A stretch of DNA of 64,000 nt from Piromyces finnis finn (taxonomy: Eukaryota; Fungi; Neocallimastigomycota). Both the position numbers and the translations under genes were made by a program. The notes beneath the pieces were generated by a model. It was not told the DNA's origin. It saw only the letters and a list, made by a program, of their open reading frames with translations, and searched no databases. Location: contig MCFH01000002.1 in NCBI GenBank assembly GCA_002104945.1, positions 1,550,001-1,614,000 of the forward strand, read 5' to 3'. Below are positions 10,666-31,376 of the stretch, piece by piece; positions within the stretch are counted from its first letter, which is position 1; every line of letters begins with the position of its first letter.

Positions 10666-13600
10666 ATGAGTGAGAATAAAAATAAAATAATAAATGATTT
10701 CGATAATTATATACAAGCAAAACGTAAAGATTCATTTAATCAATTTAAAATCCGTTGGGAAAGTATTATGAATCGATATTCGAAACCAATTTTAAATGAT
10801 GATGTTGTTGATTTATTTACTGGAGAAATTATAGAAGATCATGGTTTTATAAAATCTGTAAAACCATTACCTTTCGGTTCAATAGTAAATTCAATAGAAG
10901 ATGAAAGCGAAGTAAATTCATCTCATTTACAAACTGATACAGAAAATAATTTTACCTATGATGAAGATGATTTTGATAATTTATTAACACCTAAAAAACA
11001 AACTTTACTTCAAGTGATATCCCAAAGAACTACAAAAAAAAAAAAAAAAAACAGATAAATGTACTAATAAAAATATAAAAGATGTTTTTCATACTCAAGA
11101 GGTTACTAATAAAAATACTACTGATATTGATTACATAATAAAAGAAACAAATGACAATAAATTAATTAGTAATTCTACTAATGATTTCATATCTAATTCA
11201 AACATACTACTATCAAAGTTTGATGGTAATTATAATAAGCAAGAAGTTTTTGATTCTATTATGGAAATGGGTTTTAATTCAAATAATGAATTAAGTGATA
11301 ATGAAGAAATTGCAGATGAATTAGATTTGTTTTCTGATATTGGCATTCCATCAGTCGATTTTGATAAACATAACATTAAAGATATGTCTGTGGAAATTTT
11401 AGAAAGTGAGGAAGAAGAAGAAGATAACAACAATATAGAAGTAATAGAAGATGATGTAAATAGTATAATTGACATTTCAGATGATTCAAAAGCATTATCA
11501 TCAAATATAGTAATAATTAGTGATGATGAAGAATCAGATATTAATGATATCTTTGAACCAATTAAAAATAAAAAAAGAAAAATAGAATATGACGATTGTA
11601 ATATTTTAATTAATAGTAATAATAGTTCCAAAAAACTAAAAGTAAAAGGAATTGATAAGTATAGTAATATTGAAATTGAGGAAATTGATAGCAAATTACT
11701 TAATATACCAATTAATATTAAAAAAGATTTAGATAATGATATTAAAATAGAAGTTGTGAATGAAAAGAGTTATGAAAAAATAGCAGAAGTAAAAATTAAA
11801 AATGAAATATCAACAATAAAAGTAAATAAAAAATCAGGGAGTTTTATACAAAACAAAAAAAAGTTAAATAAAAATAATGATAATGATAATAGAGAAAATA
11901 ATAATAATAAATTTGAGATGATTAAGCAAGAATCAAACAAAAAAAAACATGAATTAAATGATATTAATTTAAATAAACCTGAATTTATTCAATACTCAAA
12001 AAAATATATTAATAATAAAATTAAATTAAATTTAAAAGATGATAATTATTATGATACAATAAAAGTAAATAATTTAAAAAAAAAAGCATTAGAAATAAAG
12101 CTCAAAGAAATGAGAAAAAATGAAGATAATCTAAAAAATGAAAATAAATATGAAGAGTTAAAACAAATTTTTGAAAGTTCGAATGATAATTGTAATTCAG
12201 TAATTATTAATATGAATAATGATAAAAAGAAAAAAAAAAAAATAAAAAATAATGGCATTGTAGAGGAAAAACAAGAATTAGTTATGAATGATATAATAAA
12301 CAAAGAAAAGGAAGAAATATATAAGAAAATGAATAAAAATTATAATAGCTGTAATAAGACTGATGAGTTGATAAAAGAATTAGAAGATTCAAAAAAAAAA
12401 AAAAAAGTTCAAAATAATCAAAAATTAAATGAAAAATATCGAAATCAGCAAAATATTATTTTAAATCACATCGAATTTAATTATATAATATTTAATGATA
12501 CCTCCTTTTATTTAATATATACCTTATTATTAAGTAATAATAACAATAAATATAAAGCTTATTTTCATTTTTTAATTTTTGATAAATTAAGGGAGCTTTT
12601 AAAGAATTTGTGGTATTTCCAGAAACCAAATATAAAAATGATCTCTTTTGGTAATAATGTAAAGAATTTTAACAACAATAAAGAAAATTTATCCAATAAT
12701 GAAAAAAATAGTAAACATTCTTCTTCTAATAATAATAATAATAATAGCAATGGTAATAATAATGATAACCATAATAATAATAATAATAATTGCAATGGTA
12801 ATAATAACGATAATAATAATAATAATAATAACGATAATAATAATAATAATAATAATAACGATAATAATAATAATGATAATAATAATAATAATAATAATAA
12901 AGATAAAGAAAATAAAGATAACAAAAATTATAATAAAAAAAAAAGGAAAAAAAGAAATATTATAAAAGAAAATAAAAAAATATTAAAAATCAATAATAAT
13001 GATAATGAAAATACCGAAAAAATAATAAAAAATGATTATCAAAAGAATAATAAATATGAAATAGAAAAAGATATAAAAGAGATAGAAGGAAATAATCAAG
13101 ACGATGTTTTAATAATAGATGTAAAAAGAAATATTAATATAAACTTAAATAAAAGTGATAAGCAAGTAAAAAATAACGAAAAAAATAAAAATGATGATAA
13201 TAAAATGATTCCAAAAAATATTTCAAGATCAAATAATAAATTAATAAAGAACTCAGATAATAAGCAAGAAGAAGAATATGATATTATTAGTAAAAGCTGT
13301 GATAAAAAACTGAATGGATTATTTTATAATGATAATTTCAATAATATTAAGAATATTAAAAATATTCATTATCAAACTAATAATTCTTTTATTGTTGAAA
13401 TTAAAAATGACGATAATAAAAATAGTATTAATAATATTCCTGATAAATCCTATAATATAAATAATTTAGAAATAATAAAAAGCAATAATGAAGACTGTAA
13501 TGATAAAGATGTTGTAGAAATTAACGATGATGATGATAATATGAGTAGTAATATTGATTTAAAGGAAATTAATAATAATAATAACATTGAAAAAGATAAT

Positions 13601-16600
13601 TGCGTTGATGAAATAATAATTATTGAGACAAAAAGTAATAAAACCAATAAGAATAAAGATAGACTATCACAAAATTATTGTAATATAAAAGAGAATATAA
13701 TAAAGCCTAAAAATACTTCGTTGATTCTTGAAGTTAATAAAGTTAATGATGGTAAAGATAATGATAATAATAATGATGATGATGATGATAATAATAATAA
13801 TAATAATAATAATTTGAAACTTGGATTTCAGAGTTCGAATTATCTAACTCAAATAAATAATAAATACAAAAACTCAATTATACAAAAAGAGTTAGAAAAA
13901 GAAATTTGTGTTATTGAAGATAGTTCATCAGATAATAATTCAGATGAATATATGTCTAATGATTTTGAATCACATAAATATAAAAATTCGATAATAACAA
14001 TTAATAATAATAAATTTATTGAACCTTCAAATTACAACAATAAGATCATTACTTCTGTAAATGAAAATATCGAAAATAAAACCATCAAAGTAATAAATAG
14101 TGAGAATGAATTTATTATATTATCTGAAAAAGATATTGTAAATCAAATTATTCATTTTATAAAAAATAGAAATAAAGATTTTCCTGATGTAAATAATACT
14201 GATAGTAAAAATAACAATGATACGGATAATGATAATAATAACGATAAAAATTATGATAAGAGTAATAATATTGAAATAAATCAAAAAAGTAATAATTATG
14301 ATGTTGAAAATATAAACCTCCAGAACAATAAAAATGTAAATGCTTTTATTTCAAAAAAATACATGAATAATAAAGAAAGTAATATAATTAATTCCTTAGC
14401 AATATCTGTAAATTCAATTAATGGTACTAATAACATTAATCTGTATAATAAAAAAAATTATAATATTAAAAATGAAAATACAATTAACAAAAACAATATT
14501 ATTAATATTAATAATGAAAATAATAGCAACAGCGGTCCAATTATAATTTGTGTTAATGATAATAATAAAGATGATCAGGTATTAAATAATCAATTAAAAC
14601 TAAATGAAAACATAAATAATAATAATTATAGTATTAATAAAATAAATACTTTTGGTATTATAGATGATAATATCAATAATGATAATAATAGTAATAGTAA
14701 TAATAATAGTAATAGTCAAAGTAATAGTAATAGTAATAGTCAAAGTAATAGTAATAGTAATAGTAATAGTAATAGTAATAGTAATAGTAATAGTAATAGT
14801 AATAGTAATAGTAATAGTAATAGTAATAGTAATAGTAATAGTAATAGTAATAGTAATAGTAATAGTAATAGTAATAGTAATAGTAATAGTAATAGTAATA
14901 GTAATAGTAATAGTAATAGTAATAGTAATAGTAATAGTAATAGTTGCAAAGTGGAAACAAAGTATATTAATGAAAATGATAATAATAATAAATTAAATAT
15001 TATAAGTAGCATAAAAAAAAACAGCTTACATGATTTCAATGACAGAAGTGATGTTTTTTTACATAAGAATGAAAATATATTAATAAATAAGCATAAAGAT
15101 ATTAATCAAATATCTAAAAATAACCACAGTTTTGATAGATTGCAAAAAGATATTATTAAAGATGAAATTTTTAAAAACGAAAAATTAGAAATTAATTCAA
15201 AAAAACAAAAAACTATTTGTGAAGATGTTTATTTCAATAACGATGATAATGTTAATAATGTAAATTCAAATTATGATAAAGTAAATAAAATTAACAGTAA
15301 AACAAAAGAAATCAAGAATTATAATGATAAAAATGGATTTTATCTCCAAAATGTTAATGACAAAGATAATGAAGAGTTTGATGAATATAGTAACCAAAAA
15401 AGAAATAATAATCAAATAATTTATCCAAATAAAGAAATTGAAACAAACTTAATATCTAAACTAAATAATAAAAAGAATGATACAGAAATAATAAAAATTG
15501 GTGCTTTTGAAAATAGATTAAATAGAAAACCTAATTCATCTAATTTAGCAAATACTGTTGCTCTATATCAGAATAAAATTTATCTAGAAAGTAATATAAA
15601 AAAATATAAAAACGTTGAAAATGAAATAAATAAAAGAAATTATAATATAAAAAAGGAAGACAATTTAAATGAATCGAAAGTTGAAAATTATACTATTAAT
15701 AAATCAAAAATTACCAATGATTTTCTACATAATAATAGAAATGATAGTAGTAAATCACTTAAGAATATAATAATCTATAAACAAGATCGTAATAATAACG
15801 TAAATATACAAAAATATGATGCTAAAAATCAAATGAATAATCAAAAAGAAAATAATGGTATTGATAATAAAATAAAGTTCCAAAAGAATAATAATGAGAC
15901 CTATAAAATAATGAGTGTAAATGATATTATACCTTCAACAAAACAGATAATTAGCAATGATTATAGGGACAATAAATATATTTTAAATAATATTAGTGAT
16001 ATAGAGAGTAAGAATATTAATAAATTTAAATATAAAAAAAATTCTAAACTTTTAAAAATTAATAATAAAAAAATCATTAATAATGAGAATATAAATGATA
16101 ATAATTATGAAACTTGTACAAACGATAATAAAATGATAAATGTCGAAAATGGAAAAAAAATATTTGATAAAGATTATATTAAAATAGAGAATATAGGAAA
16201 ATGTACTAATAATATCAAAGAAAATTTGGAAATTAATAATACAGACAGTAAAAGCAGTAATTCAAAAATAAGTGATAAAAAATCAATGGATATTGGTTTT
16301 GATTCTAATGCAATAAAATTAAATTTTTCAATAACTGATATGAAAAATGAAAATAAATATAATGAATTAATACCTAAAAAATATATAAAAAACAATAGTA
16401 CTGAATTAAAAAAAGAACGAAAAGATATGGAGATGCAAAAAAATTCTTTTGCTATTTTGAACGAAAATAATAATAAAAGAATGAAAAACAATGTAATTAA
16501 AAAAGAAGGAAATATGAATGCCACTGAAAAGAATGAAAGTAATAACTTTTTAAATGATAATAATAGTATATACGATAAAATAGTCAGTAATAATAAAATT

Positions 16601-18686
16601 AAAAATTATGAGAAAAATAATATGTATACTATTACAAAGAAACAAAATAAGAATGAGCATAATGAAAGTAGTAATCAAAATAATCAAAATGAAAATAATA
16701 ATAATAATGTTAATGACAAAGAAATTAAATATATAGATAAAATAACATCAGAAGTTGATGAAGAAAAAAAGAAAAAAGATACAAGATTATTAATTAGAAT
16801 GGATAAAAATACTTTAGATGATATATATACCTATTCACATGACATGGTAAAAAGGAAACGTAAAAATAATAAGTTATTGAAATCATTATTGAACCTAAAA
16901 AAGAAAGATAATTTAAAAATTAAAAATAATTCATCAGACACTTTTGAATATTGTAATTCTTCTGGTAGTGATATTGAAAATATAGATGATACAATACGAA
17001 TGATATATAAAGAAAAGTATAAAGCAGCAAAAATTTATTCTGATAACTATAGTAATTTTGATAGAGATTTTGCTGATTTAGTGGATTTAGCACTTTCAAG
17101 AAAGTTAAATCAATGTATTAATTGGTTTGATGATATAGATAAGAAAAGAATAGAAGAGGGAAACTCATTCGACACGGATATTAGTTCATCCATTGATTTA
17201 AGTGAATCAATTGAATCATTTACAATTTCTTCTATATCTTCAGATGAAATATATACAGGAAAAGAAAATAATAAATATAAAAATTCAAATTCTAAATTTA
17301 TTGATGTTGAAAAATTATCACAAAAAATATCATTTGAAGAATTAAATGAGTCTTCAAATGAAACTTCATCAATGTGTATTTCAAATATTCCAGAAGAAGA
17401 TTCTTCTTTAAATAAAAGTGGTTATTACTTACGAAAGCCTAAATTAAATTTATTGAATTCAGAAAAAAAAATTATAGATCCAATTGTAATAGATAAAATT
17501 GAAATTATTGATAGTGATGACTACTTAAATAACAAATCTAGTTCTTCATCAAAATCAAGAATTAGTGAAGATGATATAGAAATTATAAGTGAAACAATTA
17601 ATATTTCTAATTTAAAAAAAAAAGAAAAGAAAAATAATTTTACTGATTTTATGATAAATAATAAAGTAATACCTAAAAGAAAAGAAAGTAAAAGATTTTT
17701 AATGAATAACTTCATTGATTTAGATAGTGAAGATAGTGACTCACCAAATAATTCAATACATAATAATAATTCAACTAGTCATGATGAAAGTTCAATAAGT
17801 TCTATTCATCTAGACCAAAAAAACGATCAACGTAATATATTTTCAAGAAATGAATTAAAGTCAATTATTGATGAAGCAATAAATAATTATGAATATAAAA
17901 GATTATTTGGTAATGATAATAATAATTATATACATCATATACATCATGATGATGATTTAAATTCAGTCTCCAAGTATTCTAAAAATGAATATTATATGAA
18001 AAAGGTAAAAAGAAATAGCTCTAAAAATAATAGTTATTCAAAAAATAATAAAATAATAAATGATCATAAAATGGTGACAAAAAAAAATAATAAATTAAAT
18101 TCAATGATACTTTATAATAAAAGTAATATCGATGAAAATGCTGATAACGTTAATAAAGTATGTAAAAACAAAGATAAGAATAAAAATAAGTTAAATAATG
18201 ATGATGATGATGATGATAATGATGATGATGATGAATTGGAAAATATATTAAGGAAATCAAATGTTAATTTGGAAAAAGTAAAAATTAATAATAAAAATAT
18301 TTCAAAAGATTCAAATGATAATATTTCAAATAAAAAAAATGAAATGAAAAATAGCAATAGTAGCAATAGTAATAATAATAAAAAATTAAATTCTACTTTA
18401 TCAAGTTCACTTAATAATGAATTTATTTCACCATCATACCAATTTTCACCTATTTCATCTCTTCATAATCATTATATATCACTTTCCAAAAAAAAGTATA
18501 TAAATAATACTGATAATTTAATTTTCGAAAAAATAAATTATATTCGAAATTATTTAATAACAGGAAAAAATGTTAATAGTTACAACAATGGAGATAATGA
18601 TGATAATAACAATAACAATAACAACAACAAAAACAACAACAACAACAACAGCAATAATAATAATAATGATAATAATAATAATGATG

Positions 18687-18762
<76 letters not shown>

Positions 18763-20431
18763 AAGCAAATATAATTGTAACAATTTTCATAGTAACAGTA
18801 ATAATAACAACTTAAAATACAATGATAATAATTATAATAATGACGATTTCAATAAGGATAATAATAAGGATATGGATATGGATAATTATAAATTTAATGA
18901 AGATAAAGATAATAATAAAGATATATCATCAAAGATTAATGAAAAGATAAAAGATATCGAAAAACAAAAAAAAATAAGCAATATAAATAATAATGTAAAG
19001 GAAATAGAAAGTAAAAAAGATTTAATTTTGACAAATATAACATTAATTAATAATTCTGATATTCAAAATCATCATTCTGTTATGAAGCAATCATCAAATT
19101 TTGATAGTAGAATAACTTCTAAAAAACTGAACAGAGAAAATAATTTTGAAATAAGCATTCTGAAATCTTCTTCAAGATCACTACAAAATACTAAGAATGA
19201 TAATATAGATAAAGAATTAAAATTAAATAAATTTGTTTTACACCAAAATAATAAAAATAAAATCAATGATAAATATAACAAAGATAATGCTGATAATATA
19301 AATAATAACAATATAGATATTAATAATAAGACTAGTAATAATAAATTAAATAATAGCAAAAATGACTATAATATTATTAATAATAAAAATAATAATGATA
19401 ATAATAATACTACAATAGAAATTATAGATAAGATTAATACCACAAAAAACAAAAATAACACAAATATTCATTTTAATGTGAAGAATGTCAGAAATAATGA
19501 AAATAATAATACTGAGAGTATGGAAAGCAATGAAAAAAACAATGAAGAGATTATTAAAGAGAGCTATAATAAAAAGAAAAATCCTGTAATTATTGAAACA
19601 GAATCAAGAAGAATTACAAGAAGTTTGACAAGACAAAGGAAATTAAATAAAAATAAAGACCTAATTACATCAGATGATAATGATGTTACAATTATTGAAA
19701 CAAAAATTTATAATCATCAAAATATAAGAAAAAGAAGTTGGTCTAATAGAAAAATTTATAAAACTAATAGCAATAATAATGATGATGATAGTCCATTGAA
19801 TATGAAATCATCAAAACGGAATAAAGTTAATAGTATCAATAAGGATAAAAAAAATATTGTTTCAGACAATAATAATAAGATAAATGATAAAATAAAAACA
19901 ATAGTTAAAAATAAAGGAGTTAAGATTAATGATAATAATAATGATAGTAATGCTGGTAATAATAATAATAAAAATGATAATAATAACAATGAAAAAAAAA
20001 TTAAAAATATTAAAAAAAATGAAAAAAATATAATTAATAAAAATAACAGAACCAATAATCTTAAAATTAAAAATTTAAGGAAAAATGATAATAGATTAAA
20101 AACTAAAGCAAGTACCAAAAGAAATAGTGTAATAAAAGACAATAAAGAATTTAAAAATAATAATGACGATGAAATAAAAATTAGTCATAAACGTTCTTCT
20201 TTAGCAGAATTACAAAAAAGTTTAGCACTCAATAAAAAAAGGAAAATCTCAAATTCACTAGAGTTTAATGGAGACATTATTATTCAGGATGTAAAGAAAT
20301 CAAAATTGACTACTAAAAGAGATAAATATAATTATATGAAGATAAATGGGTTAAAAAAAAATTCCTTAATAGTAATTCAAGATGATAGCAAACCAAAAAA
20401 TAAAAGAAAAAAAAGCAAAAATAAAAATTAA
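10666..20431 (+). CDS. Giant Asn/Lys-rich protein (~3,250 aa) with N-terminal Scm3/HJURP-like CENP-A chaperone domain; apparent frameshift at the A18 run 11034-11051
   Basis: FKIRWESIMNRYSKPILNDDVVDLFTGEIIEDHGFIKS resembles the Scm3 motif (WESI..KY..D.IDL.TGEI..D.GH). The frame of ORF 11261-20431 is open back to 11042; removing one A fuses it to ORF 10666. Confidence 0.75.
14690..14944 (+). repeat. (AGTAAT)n coding microsatellite, ~40 units, encoding (SN)n
   Basis: Directly visible; source of the poly-Y/L/IV shadow ORFs. Confidence 0.97.
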
Positions 20432-21117: not shown

Positions 21118-24100
21118 ATGAAAAACGAAAAAAAGAATAATGAAATAAATATTCCTAGCAATTACAGTAGTAATAAGTTTTTATTATTAATATAAAAATA
21201 AAAAAACTAAAAGTACAATAATAAATTAATCTTACTTTCTTTTTTAATTATTTTAATAAATATAATTAAAACTCTAAACAAAAAGATATTTTTTTTAATT
21301 CTTCAATTAGTAGCTATTATAAAGGTAACATAAAATATTTAAATTATTTTCAATAGAATTATATGAAATATTTACTATTTTTATTTTATAAAATGGATAA
21401 TTTCATTTTAAATTTTTTATAATTTATAACTCAGAAAGAAAATTACCCAAAATTAATAAAAATTCAAATAGTAATAGTAAAAACATTTTTGGTTATAATT
21501 ATGAAAATCCATTTTTAATAAGAAAATTCAATAACCAACAAAATATTAAAAGAAAATCTAATATAAATGAATCAACATCAAACTCACGAAACACACCAAA
21601 AAAATTTTTAAATAAAAATAAAAATAATATTAATAAATTAAAATTAAAATCCCTTGCTGGAGATCCTACAGATAAAACTTTATTAGAAAATCATGGAATG
21701 CGTGTTCGTTATGAAGATTATACAACTATTGGTAATTTCTTTTAATATAGGAAAATAATAATATAATATTATCTTCTAATATATTTGAATATAAAATTAA
21801 AAGATTGGATACATGATTATGTAAGAGACAAAGCAAGATTGAGAAAAATCGTAAATAGAGTTGGTTTTAAAGGCAAAATTTTTCAGCTTTGGGATAAGTC
21901 TGTGGGATGGATGTTAGTGGTAGTTATAGGTAAATATTAAATAAAATTTTAAAATTATTTTAGTTTTAATGTTTTATCATACAATAATAATAATAATAAT
22001 AATTATAATAATAATAGGTATTATTTGTGGTGTTGTAGCAGCAGGTATTGAGATTAGTGCTAAATGGTTATTTGATAGAAAACTTGGATATTGTAAAAGA
22101 TCATTTAGTTTAAACAGAGAATTGTGTTGTAGTAACAGTAATGGTATATATTTAATTCACATATATATTTACTGTTTATATATTATATTTTATTTATTAA
22201 TATTAATTTATATTATGATAATTTATAATGACTAGAGTATATTTGTAATGAATGGGTTACTTGGGCAGCATTTCTAAATATTAAAAATGAAGAGAAAGGA
22301 TATGTTATTAACTGGATATTTTATGGTTTAATTGCTGTAAAAAAATATCACTAATAAAAATAATTAATCAATTAATTACATTATTTACATAAATAATCAA
22401 TTTTAATACATCATTTCAAATTTTAAATTTAGTCAGTTTTAGGTTTAATAAGTGTCTTAATAACCTCATTGTCTATTAAATCATCAAAAAAAAAACAGTC
22501 AGAAAAAATTAAAAAACATGATATAGAACCAATGGTGGATTTTAGTAATATAAATAAAGGAATATATTATCATTTACAAAAAATAAAAGAAGAAAAAATA
22601 TATTGTTATGCTGCTGGAAGTGGTCTTCCTGAAATTAAAACAATATTAAGTGGATTTGTAATACGAGGTTTTTTGGGTTTAAAAACTTTAATAACAAAGA
22701 TTATTGGCTTGGTATAAACATAATAGTTTAATATAAGTTTATATTAATATTCATAAAAATAGTAATATGATAATTTCATATTAATTATGTATAGATATTT
22801 TCTACTTCAGCTGGTCTAATTATTGGTACACAAGGTCCATTAGTTCACATTTGCTGTTGCATTGGTAATATAGTTTCAAGATGTTTTAAAAAATATAAGT
22901 ATAATGAGGGTAATTATATTATTTTTAAATATTATTTATTATCTATCATCAAATTAAATAAAAACGCACATATTAAAAACAACTTTAGCAAAAAGAAGAG
23001 AAATTTTATCAGCTGCTTGTTCTTCCGGTGTGGCAGTCGCATTTGGCGCACCAATTGGTGGTGTTCTTTTTAGTTTTGAGGAAGTTAGTTATTATTTTCC
23101 TCAAAAAACAATGTGGCGATCCTTTATTGCTGCAATGGTTGCAGCTGTAACTTTAAAAGTAATTATTAATTAGAAATATTAAAATTATACATATTCTTTA
23201 ATATATTTATTTTATTTATTATTTAGTATACTAATCCATATCGAACTGGAAAAGCTGTTCTCTTCGAAGTTGTATACAATAAACAGTGGCATTATTTTGA
23301 AATAATATATTTTGTTGTCATTGGTATTTTTGGTGTAAGTAAAATAATTAAAGGTTTAAAAATTTAAAAGGAATATCATCATAGAATATTTTACTTTTAC
23401 TAAATTAAATAAATGTAGGGCTTATTTGGTACATTTTTTAATAAAATTAACTTAAAATGGAGAAAAATTAGGAAAAACATAAAAATAAATAGATTCCCAA
23501 TTTTTGAAGTAATTATTGTTTCTTTAGTTTCTGGTTTATTAGGTTATATTAATTCTTACACCAGGTAAATTTTAATAATTGATTATTTCAATATTTTAAT
23601 ATAATATATGATTATTGTCAAATCTTATAAATAAAATTTGTACATAATAGAATTGGTAATGCTGAATTAATTGGTGATTTATTTAAAGAATGTGATATTA
23701 AGAATAAATTAAAACATGATATTTGCAAGTAAGTATAAAATGAAAAATGTATATATATATAAACTATTTAAAACCAAATTCATAACTAAAAAATATATAT
23801 CATTATTTTTATTTATATAAAAAATCATTAAGTAATGACGTGTTGTTTGGTCCTATTATTAAAAATCTTTTAATAACTTTATTTATAAAGATTATTTTAG
23901 CAACAATTACTTTATGTATCAGGGTAAATATGGATCTTTATTATATTATAAATAAAAGATAGTTAAAAAAAAATAATCAAAGAATATTTAAAATATTTAG
24001 GTTCCATGTGGTTATTTTATACCAACAATGGTTTCTGGTGCATTATCTGGAAGAATTTTTGGGATTTGTCTTTTAAAGTTAACCAAGTAAATTTTTAATT

Positions 24101-24603
24101 AATTGTACTATAATTCAAAAAAAAGTATTTAATACACTAATTTTTTGATAATCTAGATTATATCCAAACTTTTTTTTATTTTCATTTTGCTCTACAGATG
24201 GTGAATGTATAACTCCAGGTGTTTATGCAATGTTGGGTGCTGCTGCTACACTTTGTGGTGTAACCCGTATAATAATATCATTAGTAGTAATTATGTTTGA
24301 ATTAACAGGTGGTGTTTCATATGTTATACCAATTATGATTACTATCTTGACTTCAAAATGGACTGCTGATGCTTTTAATAAAAATTCCATTTTTGATTGC
24401 TTAATTGAAGAAAATGATTATCCATATCTTAATAATAAGAAAATTCCAATTCATCAAAAATCAATTGTAGATATTATGGACACTGATGTTATAACTTTAG
24501 AAGCTAATCATAAGTATTCTATTGATGAGTTAATTGATATTCTCAATTGTAAACTTTGTATGTAATAATATATATTAATTCAATAATAAATAAAGGAATA
24601 GAA

Positions 24604-24652
<49 letters not shown>

Positions 24653-25680
24653 TTAATATTAATAATATATATTTAAAAAAAAACTGAATAAAAGTAACAT
24701 CCCAATATTCAGATGATAGTGGTTTTCCTATTCTTGATAATGGCATCTTAGTAGGCTATATAGCATTTAATGAATTAGAAAATGCTATCTGCTTAGTAAA
24801 GAAATTATCCTGGAATAACAAGCCATGTTATTTTAAACGTATCATTCAAAACTATAATACTGAAATTGACTTAACCAAAAATTCATTCCCATTGAGACAA
24901 AAAAACATTAAAGATATATTTTCACCAGTTTCCACTTCTATTCTCAATTCTTTTCAACGAAAAAGTTTTCTTCAAAAATCACTAAATGATGAAGAAAGGA
25001 TTTCACTTTTAAGTAGACAAGAAGATAAAACTAATAATTTTTCACCATTTAGACAACAATATGACTCCATAAACTCTGATATTCATAACCCAATTGATAT
25101 ACCATTATCATATTATCAACAACAACTTCGACATTCCTATATAACTAAGTTTGAACATCCCAATTATAATAGTACTACAAGTTCTCAATTAAACCACTCA
25201 TTTAATTATACTTCTCAATTGAAAATTCAACATTCAAAATCACAAACACCAAATGAAATAACATATACTCCATTATTCAATATCTCATCAAATCCTAATA
25301 ATGACAGAAAAACTAAAATATCTTCTACTTTATTCTCTTTACCTCATGAAGACATTATTGAACAAGATTATAATGAATTTAGAAAACCATTAGTATATCC
25401 ATTCCCGAATTCTTATTATGCATTACTATTAGCTGCCTCTAAACCTAATAATGAAGAAAATATCTTAAAAGATAATAAATTAATTGAACCTGAAATTATT
25501 GATTTCACACCATGGATTGATCAAGCCCCTATAATGATTTCAGCCAATTCAAGTATGGAATTAGCTACTGAAATGTTTGTACGATTAGGTACTCGTTTTT
25601 TGTGTGTTGTATTAGATGGTCATTTTGTTGGGGTTATCCATAAAAAAGCATTAATTAAATATATTAAGTCAATAAAATGA
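21118..25680 (+). CDS. CLC-family chloride channel/transporter (ClC-3/Gef1-like) with C-terminal CBS region; multi-exon
   Basis: Exons encode [107 protein letters not shown] and [18 protein letters not shown]. The start exon (ATG 21118, phase-1 intron ending at 21434) is tentative. Confidence 0.93.
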
Positions 25681-25808: not shown

Positions 25809-28800
25809 TTTTTTTTTTTTTTTAACGGCATCAAATATTTTAAACTTTATTATTAATTTAATTAAAATTACAATACATGTAATAAAAAAAATTAAAAATA
25901 AAAATAAAAATAAAAAAAATATGTTTAAATAAACACAAATGAATAAAAATTGGGTATAATGTATTCTAGTAATTTTAATTAAAGTAAGAAAGCCACTATC
26001 ATACTAAAGTATAATAATTGTATTTGACTTCCAATGGGACACCGAGCCAAAGATCAAAATTTTGTCATGGAACAAAATTATGATCTCCATTGGTTGCGCT
26101 GGCCCTCCTGGCCTGTCTTACTGTTTCTTCAGCATTGACGCTCTTGGATGTTGCTTCAAACCTTTTGAACATTGACCATTGCTGGCCAATAGCAAAAGGC
26201 ATGATTTTGGTTAGAAGTTCCGCGGTTACCGTCAAGAATGGTGTTCCTTCATTAGTACCAGATTGAATCTGACGCTTACAAAATTCTTTCCATTCCCTTG
26301 AATTGTAATTAATATTGTTAAAACTTCTTCCCCCAAGAAGGAATTTAAATATTTTACTGCACACACTAGAATAATCATACACATTAATATTCACCGGATT
26401 ATTAGAACTATTACTATCATTAACTAAATTACTATCTAAATTAGAATTATTATCATCACTATTGCTATCATTACTAATATTATTATTTCTATTACTACTA
26501 TTGTTATTATTACTATTTCTATTATTACTATTACTACTATTGTTATTATTACTATTGTTATTATTATTATTGTTACTATTACTATTACTGTTATTGCTAT
26601 CTCTGCTGACATTATCAATTTCATTATTATTGATAGGACTGTTGGAATTACGTTGACTGAAAAAATTTAGTAGCTGGACTATGGAATCATAATGTTTAAT
26701 ACGGATATCTCTAAATGTTGGACAATCTAATAACCAATATTTAATACTTTGATCTCCACACTTGCAACATGGACAGTAGTTAGGACAAACTGGATCAACA
26801 AATTTAGCAGCTTTGGCAACTCTAGCATCCAACTTGTATCCGCTTCTTGCTTTCAATAGCCAGTAGAAGCCATAGGCAAACTCTGGGTACTCATAACATA
26901 ATTTAATAAAATATTTAGTTTCAATAAATTTATTATCATCATAATATTGCGCTTTGATTGAATTCCCTTTGAGATCTTTCCAATAAAAGTTTTTAACTGC
27001 TTTAACATCTCCATGTTTCTTTAGTTTTTTATCAAGTGTCCTACTTGATTTGCACCACGTGTATTTTCTAAATTTAGGAATGTAATTGACAAGGTGTGAG
27101 ATAATACAATTTGAGTTTTTCCATTTGTTAAAACATCTAACCTGAGCTAACGCACATTTGGCTGACAATGGAGGAATATTCAAATCTTTTGAGATAGAGT
27201 ATAAAGATATAAACGATACAGCTTTATGAACTCCGGCAATCCATCGTATTCCTTTGTTAACATGCTTCTGAGCAATCCTAGACCTAGCTTTGTTGGATCC
27301 AAGTAATGGTGCAAAGTATGAAACTCTGCTAATCACTTGTGAGTTAAGTACTAGTTTTTTGAAAGGAATAGGAATATTAGGATTTCTTAAGAATCTACTG
27401 ACTGAAAAAAGTCCTTTCAAAACCTTGTTATTAAGAGTTTTAATTACTGGTTTAAGGGACAAATTCTTATCAAATGGAACACCAAGATAAGTATAGCAAT
27501 CAGTAGTTGGAATGGGTTGTCCTGCTAAGTAAAATGTTGGATCTCTCTTGTTCTGATTTTCTATTGATTCAGGACGAATCACCATCGTTGAACATTTCTG
27601 AATACCAAATTCCATTTCATTATACAAGGCCCATTCATTAACTCTTCTAAGCATCTTTTTTAAGCATCCTCCTGTTGGAGCACAAATAACTATATCATCT
27701 GCAAAAAGTCCACCACAGCATCGAGTGTCACCTAAACTGACTCCAAGATCTTCGCACTCTTTAAATATATCATTAATAAAGAGATTAAAGAGAATAGTAG
27801 AAAGAGGGAAACCTTGACGGACTCCTTTCTTCATATCAAAAGATTTCGAGAATTGTCCATCTAATTTGACATTAGCCTTAGATGTAAAATATAAATTTTT
27901 GATGAATTGTAAACTCTTACCTCGGATTCCTAAACAATCTAATTTATGGAGAATATTACCGATTGGGACTGAATCGTATGCTTTCCTGAGATCTAAAAAG
28001 GCCAAATATGTCTCTTTATTATCTAATTGACGTCTACGGCATATTTCTTGGATTGAAATGAAAAGACTGATACTTTCTTCCTTTTTTCGAAAACCAAATT
28101 GTTCAGGTCTAATGAAATTATTCTTTAGACCATATTCTGAGATTCTAGTGGTGACAATTTTGGAAATCAACTTAATGCCATTATTGATAAGTGATATACC
28201 TCGATAGTTATCACAATCTGTCAAATCTCCCTTCTTAGGAATAGAAACAATACTGGATTCATTCCATGAGTTGGGGAAGTCTCCATCCCAAATACGGTTG
28301 AATAATTTAAGAATAAAATTTAAACCATGAGCATCATTATCTGAAGTGGTATTACCAGAAGAAATATTATCTGTAACATTATTAGAATCATTACTTGATG
28401 GAATTAATGCTTTGTAAAATTCAATTGGAATACCATCCGGACCTGATGCTTTATAATTTGGAGTAGAGAGGATAGCTGACTTGACTTCATCAATACTAAT
28501 ATCTTGGTTGATATCCCACTCATCAAGCATAGGAAGTGAAAAACGTTTATTCATTGGTTCTTCATACCAATGCTCTAAATCAAGACTTACACCACTTGGA
28601 TCTGATGCAAGCTTTTCGAAATGATCATGCCACACTTCTAGTTGTTCTTCCGTAGCAACAACTAATTCTCCATTTTTATTTTTAATTGGTTGAGCAATAA
28701 AGAAAGAATCTTTTCCAATTTTTGCAGTTTTCTTGATCCATTTCCAGGCCTTCTTAGGATTATGACTCTTCATATACTCACATCCTGTTTTAATCCAATG

Positions 28801-31376
28801 AAGATATTCTTGCTTCCTAAATTCATTACATCTTTTGTGGATGTAATCAATGAGCTTATGGTAGATTTTAATTCGTTTAATAAATTCATCTATATCATAA
28901 ATTCTTTCTTTTTTAAATCTCTTATACAACTTCATTTTGATTTTTTGAAGATTAAAAATTTGTTGTGAAATATGAAATGAAGACTTTATAACATTATTTG
29001 CTGAGGTAATACTGAGCTCGTCTGCAATTGAAAAAGCAGTTGAAGTAAACTCTTTGGAAAGTTCATCTGTAGAAACATTAGGATCGTTGAATTTGGCTGA
29101 AAGTATTTGGAATTTATTATGACTGAGAATAGATTCCTTTTCCTCAATACATTTTAATCTATTCCATTTCAGAATTTTCTTAGGAACATTAAAGTCATTA
29201 GAAAAATCTTCCATAGGAATAATTTTACCATTAATAAGAAGTGGCTTATGGTCTGATACAGGATAAAAATTATTTATAAATGATCCTGAGTGAATAAGAT
29301 CTTTCATCTTCGAATTGATAAGAGCATGGTCAATGTCGGAAGATTGATCACCTCGAGTCCAAGAGATAGTCGACCCTCTAAGCGGAAGAATTTCCCAATC
29401 TCCTAATCCATTAGTTGATAACCAGTTGGATAATTTTACTTTAGACATATTAAAATCACCAACAAGAATCGATGGATGGGATGAATGAGTTTGTAACCAC
29501 AAGCGAACTTCTAACTTTGCATGATCAACATAGATGTTGTGATGACTATGAGGCATATAAACATTTCCAATCGAGCATTTGAATCTATTCCAGAGACTAA
29601 AAGTATAAATAGAAATAATATACTTTCCAGAGAAGTTTTCAAGTGAGGCTTGACATGAATTGTGAAAACCTAAATATAAACCTCTCATTCCAGGAACTGA
29701 TTCGTCAGCTTTCTTGAAAAAGTGTCTATAGTTTCGCAAAGTAACACGACAAGGATAATCTGTATTCGATCCAGAACCATTACCAGTTTCTTGGAAACAT
29801 AAAAATAATGGTTTGAAAATAGCTGTGAAATAGCTAATACTATCTCTCTTTTCGTGATTCCACCCATTGGTGTTCCAACTAAGACAAAAAGAAAAGTTAT
29901 CAGGCTTGTTGGATGAGGAAGAATCGTTGCTATTATTATTATTATTAAAGTCATCGTTATTAATGGATGATGCATCAGAGGAATAAGTAGAACTATTACT
30001 AGATGGCTGTGAAACTGAAGAACTATCAACTATTGAACTGTTATCAGAGTTGATAGAGCTATTAGAATTAATTGTTGAATGTTGAGATTGAAATTGTGTT
30101 TGCTGTAGATCTGGAATATTTTCATGATGGGAAACTTGTTGAAGATCCTGTTGAAGATCTTGTTGAAGATCGGATTGTTGATGAGATTGTTGAACTGATT
30201 GTTGAAGTGATTGTTGAATTGAAAGTTGATGTTTATTAGAAACTAAAATTTTACGTTTGAGTGTGGAAAAAGTGTATTTGTGATTCCTTCTACTACGAGC
30301 TGAAAAGGAAATTGAGGTAACTGAAAGTTTCTTCTTTAACATGTGTAAGATTTTAATACAATCTTTCGATGAACCATGAACCTTGACTAAGAAAAAGTGA
30401 TCATTGAAAGTCTGAAAATATTTAACACTAATAACTGAATTAAATTTATCTTCCAGAATAACCTCGAGTTTATCCCATAGCATATTTACTGACCATGATC
30501 GAATACCACGAATAAAGAAGGAGCGAATATCATCTAAGGGGATACCATAAGACCGGGTACCACGTCTGATATAATTCTTATCTTTAATATAAAGGACTGA
30601 CATGATAATTAATTCTAATTAAAAAATATTGAATATAAAATAAATACTAATAAAAATTATAAATATAACGTATATGGAAAAAAATCTGTCTCTCTCTCTC
30701 TTCTTAAAAGTACTGGATAGTACAAAAATTGTTACGATGCTTTGTTTAAAGTTTAAAGTTTCTTTTTTTGAATTCTAGTTGTAAATTTTCTTTAAAAATT
30801 CTAGTTTTGGTTTGTTGTTAGTAAATTCGATTCGCTTTTTGACACTAAACTTGTTTGACTTTACTTTTCATTAAATATTTAAATTGGTAAAAAATTTGAA
30901 TCAAGAATGCCGACACCAGAAAGCTTGTGAATAGTATTTTTACATGATGTAGAGTGAATCAATCTCTTACAAGAAACAATACAACAATAGCTACATGAAT
31001 ATAAAAATACAATGCAAATGCTAAAGTTACCTACATTGGATTCTTACAAGAGAAGAGTAGTACTACATGAATACATGAATAAAAGAAAAAATACAGCAAC
31101 AAAATGTATTACTCTTCTAATTAAATACTATACAAACTTACCTGAATATCAAACATTCAACTTATTCATCAAATACTTAAATTCGATGGATAAATGTTTT
31201 TTAATCGCTCAGTACCATGAGCTTAGTCCTAATAATTTTCCCTTAAAGACTAACCAAGCATCCATTGCGCAATACTTGGATTTAATTCTTCCTACTCTCT
31301 CAGTACCATGAGCATGAGTAGACCCCCTTGAGAAACTACATTTATTAAATAAATGAAGGCACGTTTCCAAGAGGGC
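25809..31376 (-). mobile_element. Full-length non-LTR retrotransposon (LINE, APE-RT type), 5,568 bp, A15 tail, 13-bp TSD
   Basis: T15 at 25809-25823 (poly-A on the minus strand). Identical attataataagca at 25796-25808 and 31377-31389. ~770-nt 5' leader, one long ORF, ~240-nt 3'UTR. Confidence 0.97.
26065..30603 (-). CDS. LINE polyprotein, 1,512 aa: putative N-terminal RRM-like region, Q/S linker, AP endonuclease, reverse transcriptase, C-terminal Cys knuckle
   Basis: APE motifs SWNTNG, FQET, GNVYMP, VGDFN, SDIDH, SDHKP. RT motifs ASGPDGIP, IPKKGD..NYRGISL, QFGFR, AFLDLRKAYDSV, RQG.PLS, FADD. CPCCKC..SIKYWLLDCP near the C-terminus. Confidence 0.96.
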   Translation of the reverse strand: MSVLYIKDKNYIRRGTRSYGIPLDDIRSFFIRGIRSWSVNMLWDKLEVILEDKFNSVISVKYFQTFNDHFFLVKVHGSSKDCIKILHMLKKKLSVTSISFSARSRRNHKYTFSTLKRKILVSNKHQLSIQQSLQQSVQQSHQQSDLQQDLQQDLQQVSHHENIPDLQQTQFQSQHSTINSNSSINSDNSSIVDSSSVSQPSSNSSTYSSDASSINNDDFNNNNNSNDSSSSNKPDNFSFCLSWNTNGWNHEKRDSISYFTAIFKPLFLCFQETGNGSGSNTDYPCRVTLRNYRHFFKKADESVPGMRGLYLGFHNSCQASLENFSGKYIISIYTFSLWNRFKCSIGNVYMPHSHHNIYVDHAKLEVRLWLQTHSSHPSILVGDFNMSKVKLSNWLSTNGLGDWEILPLRGSTISWTRGDQSSDIDHALINSKMKDLIHSGSFINNFYPVSDHKPLLINGKIIPMEDFSNDFNVPKKILKWNRLKCIEEKESILSHNKFQILSAKFNDPNVSTDELSKEFTSTAFSIADELSITSANNVIKSSFHISQQIFNLQKIKMKLYKRFKKERIYDIDEFIKRIKIYHKLIDYIHKRCNEFRKQEYLHWIKTGCEYMKSHNPKKAWKWIKKTAKIGKDSFFIAQPIKNKNGELVVATEEQLEVWHDHFEKLASDPSGVSLDLEHWYEEPMNKRFSLPMLDEWDINQDISIDEVKSAILSTPNYKASGPDGIPIEFYKALIPSSNDSNNVTDNISSGNTTSDNDAHGLNFILKLFNRIWDGDFPNSWNESSIVSIPKKGDLTDCDNYRGISLINNGIKLISKIVTTRISEYGLKNNFIRPEQFGFRKKEESISLFISIQEICRRRQLDNKETYLAFLDLRKAYDSVPIGNILHKLDCLGIRGKSLQFIKNLYFTSKANVKLDGQFSKSFDMKKGVRQGFPLSTILFNLFINDIFKECEDLGVSLGDTRCCGGLFADDIVICAPTGGCLKKMLRRVNEWALYNEMEFGIQKCSTMVIRPESIENQNKRDPTFYLAGQPIPTTDCYTYLGVPFDKNLSLKPVIKTLNNKVLKGLFSVSRFLRNPNIPIPFKKLVLNSQVISRVSYFAPLLGSNKARSRIAQKHVNKGIRWIAGVHKAVSFISLYSISKDLNIPPLSAKCALAQVRCFNKWKNSNCIISHLVNYIPKFRKYTWCKSSRTLDKKLKKHGDVKAVKNFYWKDLKGNSIKAQYYDDNKFIETKYFIKLCYEYPEFAYGFYWLLKARSGYKLDARVAKAAKFVDPVCPNYCPCCKCGDQSIKYWLLDCPTFRDIRIKHYDSIVQLLNFFSQRNSNSPINNNEIDNVSRDSNNSNSNSNNNNNNNSNNNNSSNSNNRNSNNNNSSNRNNNISNDSNSDDNNSNLDSNLVNDSNSSNNPVNINVYDYSSVCSKIFKFLLGGRSFNNINYNSREWKEFCKRQIQSGTNEGTPFLTVTAELLTKIMPFAIGQQWSMFKRFEATSKSVNAEETVRQARRASATNGDHNFVP

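Follow-up and report, generated by a model that had tools for sequence, protein, structure and literature searches.

The neutralisation of the gating glutamate is the textbook means of making a CLC exchanger conduct passively. The mutation E148Q abolishes the H+ coupling of ClC-ec1, and the equivalent change in ClC-4, -5, -6 and -7 leaves a passive, non-rectifying Cl- conductance (PMC5362633). Likewise, AtCLCa E203A conducts nitrate passively in its native vacuolar membrane (bioRxiv 10.1101/2022.09.21.508937). Such a neutralisation is harmful in mammals, as seen in "unc" knock-in mice and in a Dent patient (PMC5362633, PMC11431675); ClC-5 E211A mice and a patient carrying ClC-5 E211Q develop disease despite normal acidification (PMC5362633). 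CLC proteins devoid of this residue also exist in nature, in few known cases. The kidney channels ClC-Ka/Kb carry a Val at the gating position and are largely open (PMC5362633), the plant CLCg proteins keep only the proton Glu and are presumed to be channels (PMC9867446, PMC8839641), and TbVCL2 of Trypanosoma brucei is another natural CLC without a gating Glu (PMC5731698). The CLC family tolerates the loss of the gating-Glu signature, as the examples of ClC-K and plant CLCg illustrate. This article describes a further case, found in a window of 64,000 nucleotides of the fungus Piromyces finnis (this window is the whole stretch of DNA that was analysed, and all positions refer to it). The window contains a CLC gene, BCR36DRAFT_316643, in which a Gln occupies the gating position. 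Its product is probably an H+-uncoupled, passive conductor of anions with a natural Gln at the gate, operating beside a coupled paralog.

The gene (deposited protein P0165, 948 aa) extends over positions 21698-25680 of the plus strand, and all of its features given below are on this strand. At 22825-22839, exon 6 reads in frame GGT ACA CAA GGT CCA, that is to say GTQGP in place of the helix-F signature GKEGP. The Thr codon ACA (22828-22830, residue 234) stands at the position of the Lys and the Gln codon CAA (22831-22833, Q235) at that of the gating Glu. The 115 nt of this exon align without any gap to residues 272-307 of human ClC-3 (E-value 2.9e-08, phmmer search of all PDB chains), with the Thr on the Lys column, the Gln on the gating-Glu column, and the Gly-Gly-Pro of the signature kept. 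The P. finnis protein, with its GTQGP, departs from the signature G(K/R)EGP that holds the gating Glu. As regards the two acidic residues characteristic of the exchanger class, the titratable gating Glu is missing (Q235) and the inner proton Glu is present (E292).

The other landmarks of the pore are in place. GSGLPE, with the Ser of the central site, is found at 22616-22633, and the Glu-Glu of FSFEEVS (E291 and E292) at 23078-23083; the codon of E292 (23081-23083) aligns with the inner "proton" Glu of exchanger-type CLCs. Asn364 of helix J (23449-23451) corresponds to N411 of the 818-aa human ClC-3, the GxFxP pore motif takes the form GYFIP (24001-24030), and the central-site Tyr, Y542 (24320-24322), is aligned with the GGLEY of ClC-3. 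A preliminary description of the window, made from its letters, had reported the codons of GTQGP, the additional change of the adjacent Lys, and the preservation of GSGLPE and of the inner-Glu FEE in a gene that was otherwise intact. All of this was recovered in the window and in the alignment with ClC-3, and the gene does consist of 14 exons separated by GT..AG introns, with no breaks.

The assignment of this protein within the CLC family relies on several concordant comparisons. Six exons match the PF00654 (Voltage_CLC) profile colinearly over its positions 48-346, the two best E-values being 1.2e-15 and 6.4e-14, and the precomputed Pfam domains of P0165 are PF00654 and PF00571. The first CBS domain starts within exon 13, according to the alignment with ClC-3, and the C-terminal one (25528-25668; PF00571, E-value 1e-05, residues 281-327 of the exon-14 translation) comes after a long low-complexity linker. 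When exon 13 is compared with the PDB, ClC-3 is retrieved with an E-value of 4.5e-30, against about 1e-15 for ClC-6/7 and 1e-10 to 1e-07 for ClC-1/2/K. In the tree presented below, the P. finnis protein groups with fungal and animal ClC-3-like proteins, and the names given to its relatives by the Joint Genome Institute (JGI) are "chloride channel 3/4/5". By sequence, the protein is a ClC-3/4/5-type CLC, in agreement with the ClC-3-type membership first proposed for it, ClC-3 being its best PDB match and ClC-3-like proteins its companions in the tree.

An unusual codon in a single assembly might be produced by a sequencing or assembly error, or might be the private substitution of a paralog on its way to becoming a pseudogene. 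This explanation is effectively refuted by the following observations. The deposited protein, walked along the window, meets GT..AG at 13/13 introns with no stop and no frameshift, so that all 14 exons are intact. Gln is present in 5/5 of the other Neocallimastigomycota relatives found in the same clade (clade B, see below), as GTQGP in Piromyces sp. E2 and in two JGI proteins, as GSQGP in Anaeromyces robustus and as GIQGP in the protein P0001. The latter is encoded by an uninterrupted open reading frame (ORF) of 3513 nt found on 13 Logan contigs, which are 3.6-3.9 kb long. Six of them were retrieved, all from separate SRR runs, and GGT ATT CAA GGG CCA is the reading in every one; they can be considered as transcripts because they are intron-free while the P. 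finnis gene has 13 introns. CAA is thus found in six independent ortholog transcript contigs. The ratio of nonsynonymous to synonymous substitution rates (dN/dS), computed codon by codon and exon by exon by the Nei-Gojobori method (NG86) between the window and the P0001 transcript L002, is 0.146 over 596 membrane-domain codons (dS 0.86) and 0.35 for the C-terminal exon. In addition, the words sampled from the gene stretch are present at a share of 0.94 in one DNA run, and of 0.58, 0.31 and 0.30 in three runs from the same organism that are probably RNA, the value of 0.58 being close to the exonic share. Taken as a whole, these data indicate that the P. finnis CLC is a real gene, of an expressed type and under purifying selection. 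Two outcomes that would have overturned the preliminary description are excluded at the same time: the substitution is not private, since Gln is common to all Neocallimastigomycota relatives found and to a wide fungal subclade, and the paralog is not decaying, given a dN/dS of 0.15 and transcribed orthologs.

To follow the gating residue through the fungi, a tree of 69 proteins (43 Glu-type and 26 Gln-type rows) was built by a quick IQ-TREE run with LG+C20. The fungal ClC-3-like proteins split into two paralog clades, A and B, which are about 50% identical. In clade A (20 rows), Glu is found in 20/20 and the signature is GKEGP throughout, with the exception of Polychytrium (GVEGP); this clade includes the second copies of Batrachochytrium and Entophlyctis, the Spizellomycetales, the Glomeromycota and Piromyces sp. 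E2 P0209. Clade B (39 rows) is supported at 100% by the Shimodaira-Hasegawa-like approximate likelihood ratio test (SH-aLRT) and contains the P. finnis protein together with all other Gln-type proteins, Gln being present in 26/39. These Gln members are six Neocallimastigomycota proteins including that of P. finnis, chytrids belonging to at least 14 genera (Batrachochytrium, Boothiomyces, Gorgonomyces, Entophlyctis, Cladochytrium, Nowakowskiella, Chytriomyces, Obelidium, Zopfochytrium, Dinochytrium, JEL0842, Quaeritorhiza, a Lobulomycetales metagenome-assembled genome and an ENA protein), three genera of Mortierellomycota (Mortierella, Actinomortierella and Gryganskiella) and one further Logan protein. 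The GKEGP members of clade B come from Dikarya, Entomophthorales, Basidiobolus and Calcarisporiella. Proteins of Pneumocystis and of basidiomycetes, with GKEGP, belong to clade B and that of the yeast Dipodascopsis to clade A, S. cerevisiae Gef1 being outside the sequence set.

Genomes harbouring a Gln-type protein can also encode a GKEGP paralog, as observed in P. finnis (P0293), Piromyces sp. E2 (P0209), B. dendrobatidis (P0198) and Entophlyctis (P0214). The canonical paralog of P. finnis, BCR36DRAFT_588309, combines GKEGP with GSGIPE and falls in the 90% cluster of P0209. Among the more distant relatives, two dinoflagellate-type proteins of 1300-1500 aa (P0002 and P0167) apparently contain two CLC signatures each, and one repeat in Symbiodinium natans has DAQGA at the gating motif.

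The history of the site within clade B is not that of a single replacement. Synchytrium microbalum P0030, which has GKEGP, is nested within an otherwise all-Gln chytrid group, and represents either a reversal to Glu or the sign of several independent losses. By parsimony, three Glu/Gln changes are needed, two of which are forced by well-supported branches. A topology in which the 26 Gln rows form a single clade was rejected by the approximately unbiased (AU) test (delta log-likelihood 47.3, p 0.0019), and the site has therefore changed state more than once, that is at least twice. GAA and CAA are one base apart, so that gains and reversals are not distinguishable from one another. Within the Neocallimastigomycota, the sequences indicate that the Gln state is ancestral to the orthologs.

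The comparison of Glu-type and Gln-type proteins reveals which residues remain constant beside the Gln and which are released. In the Gln-type proteins, the central Ser is kept in 23/26 and the central Tyr in 24/26, the GxFxP motif is preserved, and the position of E291 is Glu in 26/26. The Lys preceding the gate behaves differently: it is found in 37/38 Glu-type rows from fungi, animals and other holozoans (a count that excludes, out of the 43, the five outgroup rows of the dinoflagellate group) versus 5/26 Gln-type rows, where T, S, I, V, A, L, M, Q or R are otherwise encountered. Nearly invariant beside Glu and variable beside Gln, this Lys has the pattern expected if its constraint depends on the carboxylate. 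The helix-F signature of the 26 Gln-type proteins, Lys position included, was inspected for a compensating acidic residue, and none was detected. The column of Asn364 follows a comparable trend, with Asn in 42/42 of the Glu-type rows having a residue there (animals, fungi, dinoflagellates and Synchytrium), and in only 5/24 Gln-type rows, all five from Neocallimastigomycota; it is replaced in the 19/24 others. Asn364 would correspond to N340 of ClC-5, an equivalence derived from the constant numbering offset from the two glutamates and not from a ClC-5 alignment; ClC-5 N340K is a Dent mutation (PMC11431675). Asn364 changed in the same way in 2/2 independent contrasts. Leu572, considered as another covarying residue, gave a mixed result across the contrasts and was dropped. 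Over these two phylogenetically independent contrasts, no covariation of Gln with the loss of Lys234, Asn364 or Leu572 is significant, and it remains suggestive because only two such contrasts exist.

Some variations are restricted to particular lineages. The central-site motif varies in some Gln-type chytrid proteins (P0053, P0125 and P0185). The Ser is lost in the GGGIPE of Dinochytrium and the GGGISE of Obelidium. The Gln-type protein of Lobulomycetales keeps the Ser, its motif beginning with His in place of Gly (HSGIPE); it is also fused to EF-hand domains (PF13405, PF13499 and PF00036). The Neocallimastigomycota have GYFIP where the others have G[ILV]FIP.

A mechanism can be proposed on the basis of these residues. 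Gln is isosteric with a protonated Glu but cannot be deprotonated; a Gln at the gate would therefore neither shuttle H+ nor act as an anionic competitor of Cl- at its external and central sites. The protein would be expected to pass anions passively, without H+ coupling and with little voltage rectification, in the same manner as ClC-ec1 E148Q and the gating-Glu mutants of ClC-4/5/6/7. Alongside the coupled clade-A paralog, it would likely serve an endomembrane compartment as a shunt or leak for anions. Uncoupled, passive anion conduction is the best-supported reading of the data, by analogy with ClC-ec1 E148Q and ClC-5 E211A. Several points nevertheless weigh against it. The inner "proton" Glu is essentially invariant among the 26 Gln-type proteins (25 E and 1 D), and this retention is unfavourable because a purely uncoupled conductor should have no need of the inner Glu; in classical CLC channels, the inner-Glu position is occupied by Val. 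The preservation of this residue hints at a residual H+-related role (remaining H+ chemistry or pH-sensing), or at a regulatory or structural one. The rates and the gating of a natural Gln protein may also differ from those of the engineered mutants. Finally, the word shares of 0.58, 0.31 and 0.30 in the probable RNA runs bear only indirectly on the expression of the P. finnis gene.

The same inner Glu, kept in 25/26 Gln-type proteins, could be invoked to argue that H+ coupling or regulation persists by an unconventional route, through another titratable group or through this residue itself, all the more as the proton Glu is also the only one of the two retained by plant CLCg-type proteins (PMC9867446). 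Such a route is quite unlikely, however, in view of a helix-F signature that has no acidic residue in any Gln-type protein, even at the Lys position, and considering that every tested neutralisation of the gating Glu abolishes coupling (PMC5362633).

The presence of a GKEGP paralog in the same genomes leads to a different proposal, in which the Gln protein would be mainly a non-transporting or modulatory subunit, tuning trafficking or gating in a heterodimer with its paralog. This arrangement is conceivable for CLCs, whose dimers have a pore in each subunit, and the mammalian ClC-3/ClC-4 heterodimers provide a model for it. It is nonetheless an unlikely explanation: the anion-binding residues and the pore motifs are strongly constrained, which is unexpected for a silent subunit, and the two paralog clades share only about 50% identity. 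It might also be imagined that the protein is a conductor with an altered anion selectivity or another substrate (nitrate or organic anions, for example) and not a plain Cl- shunt, given the GYFIP of the Neocallimastigomycota as compared with G[ILV]FIP elsewhere and the loss of the central Ser in chytrids such as Dinochytrium and Obelidium. This residue, which has been linked to the preference for Cl- over nitrate (PMC5362633), is however kept in the P. finnis protein and in 23/26 members, and a change of selectivity appears very unlikely. The conservation of the pore residues is the reason why the modulatory-subunit, unconventional-coupling and altered-selectivity proposals were all ranked below passive, uncoupled conduction.

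A broader evolutionary proposal, which falls slightly short of being probable, is that clade B contains a natural Glu/Gln switch that was operated at least twice, each Gln lineage yielding an H+-uncoupled conductor beside a coupled paralog, with a loss of constraint on the Lys and perhaps on the helix-J Asn. If this were true, these two residues would be marked as parts of the coupling machinery, and clade B would offer a natural system for understanding why endomembrane CLCs are exchangers and not channels.

The structure of the locus can be described as follows. P0165 was found by a library-wide HMMER search using exon 13 as query, followed by a word search with the best match. The mapping of this protein onto the window places exons 1-7 at 21698-21731, 21804-21929, 22018-22143, 22236-22336, 22433-22711, 22795-22909 and 22989-23158, and exons 8-14 at 23227-23334, 23419-23564, 23651-23728, 23833-23923, 24001-24086, 24157-24557 and 24695-25680, for a total of 2847 nt. 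The protein model used here is the deposited P0165 itself, checked exon by exon against the exon translations, and not a separately joined exon model; exons 6 and 13, once translated, occur in it letter for letter. Its record (GCA_002104945.1, MCFH01000002.1) bears the titles "hypothetical protein BCR36DRAFT_316643 [Piromyces finnis]" and "Chloride channel protein": the gene is already annotated, and the change at the gating site is absent from its annotation.

The annotated start seems to be incomplete. Upstream of the Met at 21698, the frame remains open in phase with exon 1 from 21401 to 21697. The N-termini of four orthologs align to 21452-21589 (motif NYENPFL, E-values from 8e-10 to 5e-07), and the orthologs measure 997-1278 aa against 948 aa for the P. 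finnis model. Being both open and homologous to these N-termini, the region 21401-21697 is therefore probably an unannotated coding sequence of the CLC gene. The deposited model is probably truncated at its N-terminus, with the true start in an upstream exon; MKNEKKNN at 21118 is a weak candidate for this start, with a non-significant E-value of 0.5. Within the gene, a Lys/Asn-rich insert of about 40 aa (22480-22600, exon 5), which ClC-3 does not have, directly precedes GSGLPE, and the ortholog P0001 carries a far longer insert at the same place. Intron 13, between exons 13 and 14, contains a long (AAT)n microsatellite (24598-24650).

The G+C content of the window is about 20%. It rises to 32% at 26065-30603, a region that begins about 400 nt beyond the end of the CLC gene. 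The minus strand there carries an intact retrotransposon ORF of the LINE type (long interspersed nuclear element), 1512 aa in length, with endonuclease and reverse-transcriptase-like parts. On the upstream side, the plus strand contains an intronless Asn-rich ORF of 3056 aa (11261-20431), and the called gene neighbouring it carries Pfam Scm3 in the deposited record.

Natural CLCs without a gating Glu (ClC-K, plant CLCg and TbVCL2) being already known, the P. finnis protein is not the first of its kind. What appears to be new is the fungal lineage itself: ancient, spread over several phyla and of the ClC-3 type, it has at this position a Gln, the residue used to mimic a protonated Glu, together with a repeated change of state and a relaxed adjacent Lys. 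A literature search, whose coverage left out much of the subscription literature, retrieved no description of the clade-B Gln lineage, of a fungal CLC without gating Glu or of a chytrid CLC. These Gln-type proteins constitute a natural material for testing what exchange offers to the cell beyond conductance, and a route to the residues that co-evolve with the coupling Glu. There is also a gain for annotation, as databases label such fungal genes as hypothetical proteins or chloride channels with no mention of the change at the gating site.

The comparison with the described CLC systems helps to situate this protein. The human endosomal 2Cl-/H+ exchangers ClC-3 and ClC-4/5 are the closest, ClC-3 being the best match of solved structure for every exon tested. 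The P. finnis protein shares with them a membrane domain followed by two CBS domains, the GSGxPE motif, the inner Glu-Glu, the GxFxP motif and the central Tyr. It differs from them by the Gln at the gate and the preceding Thr, by the Lys/Asn-rich insert before GSGLPE, and by the long low-complexity linker between the CBS domains. The clade-A paralog BCR36DRAFT_588309, from the same genome and family and about 50% identical to the Gln protein, has in contrast kept GKEGP together with GSGIPE.

The residue neutralised in the fungal protein is the same as in the gating-Glu mutants ClC-ec1 E148Q, ClC-5 E211A (the "unc" mice), ClC-5 E211Q (the Dent patient), ClC-7 E245A and AtCLCa E203A, and in E148Q and E211Q the replacing amino acid, Gln, is identical as well. 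These mutants conduct anions passively, without coupling (PMC5362633; bioRxiv 10.1101/2022.09.21.508937). They are however of laboratory or pathogenic origin and impair physiology, whereas the fungal Gln is natural, old, under purifying selection and accompanied by a coupled paralog. Like the kidney channels ClC-Ka/Kb, the P. finnis protein is a natural CLC without gating Glu; unlike these members of the channel branch with their Val, the fungal proteins belong to the exchanger branch, carry a Gln and have kept the inner Glu. ClC-Ka/Kb depend on barttin and have no inner proton Glu. Other comparable cases are the plant CLCg-type proteins (SaCLCg and AtCLCg) and TbVCL2 of Trypanosoma brucei, which are also eukaryotic CLCs of the exchanger branch with a naturally missing gating Glu. 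They nevertheless belong to a different subfamily (plant vacuolar and ClC-6/7-like), and the signature of plant CLCg, written GKxGP, retains the Lys that is replaced by Thr in P. finnis. Lastly, the toggling between Glu and Gln that is seen in the fungal clade B has not been described for CLCg or TbVCL2.

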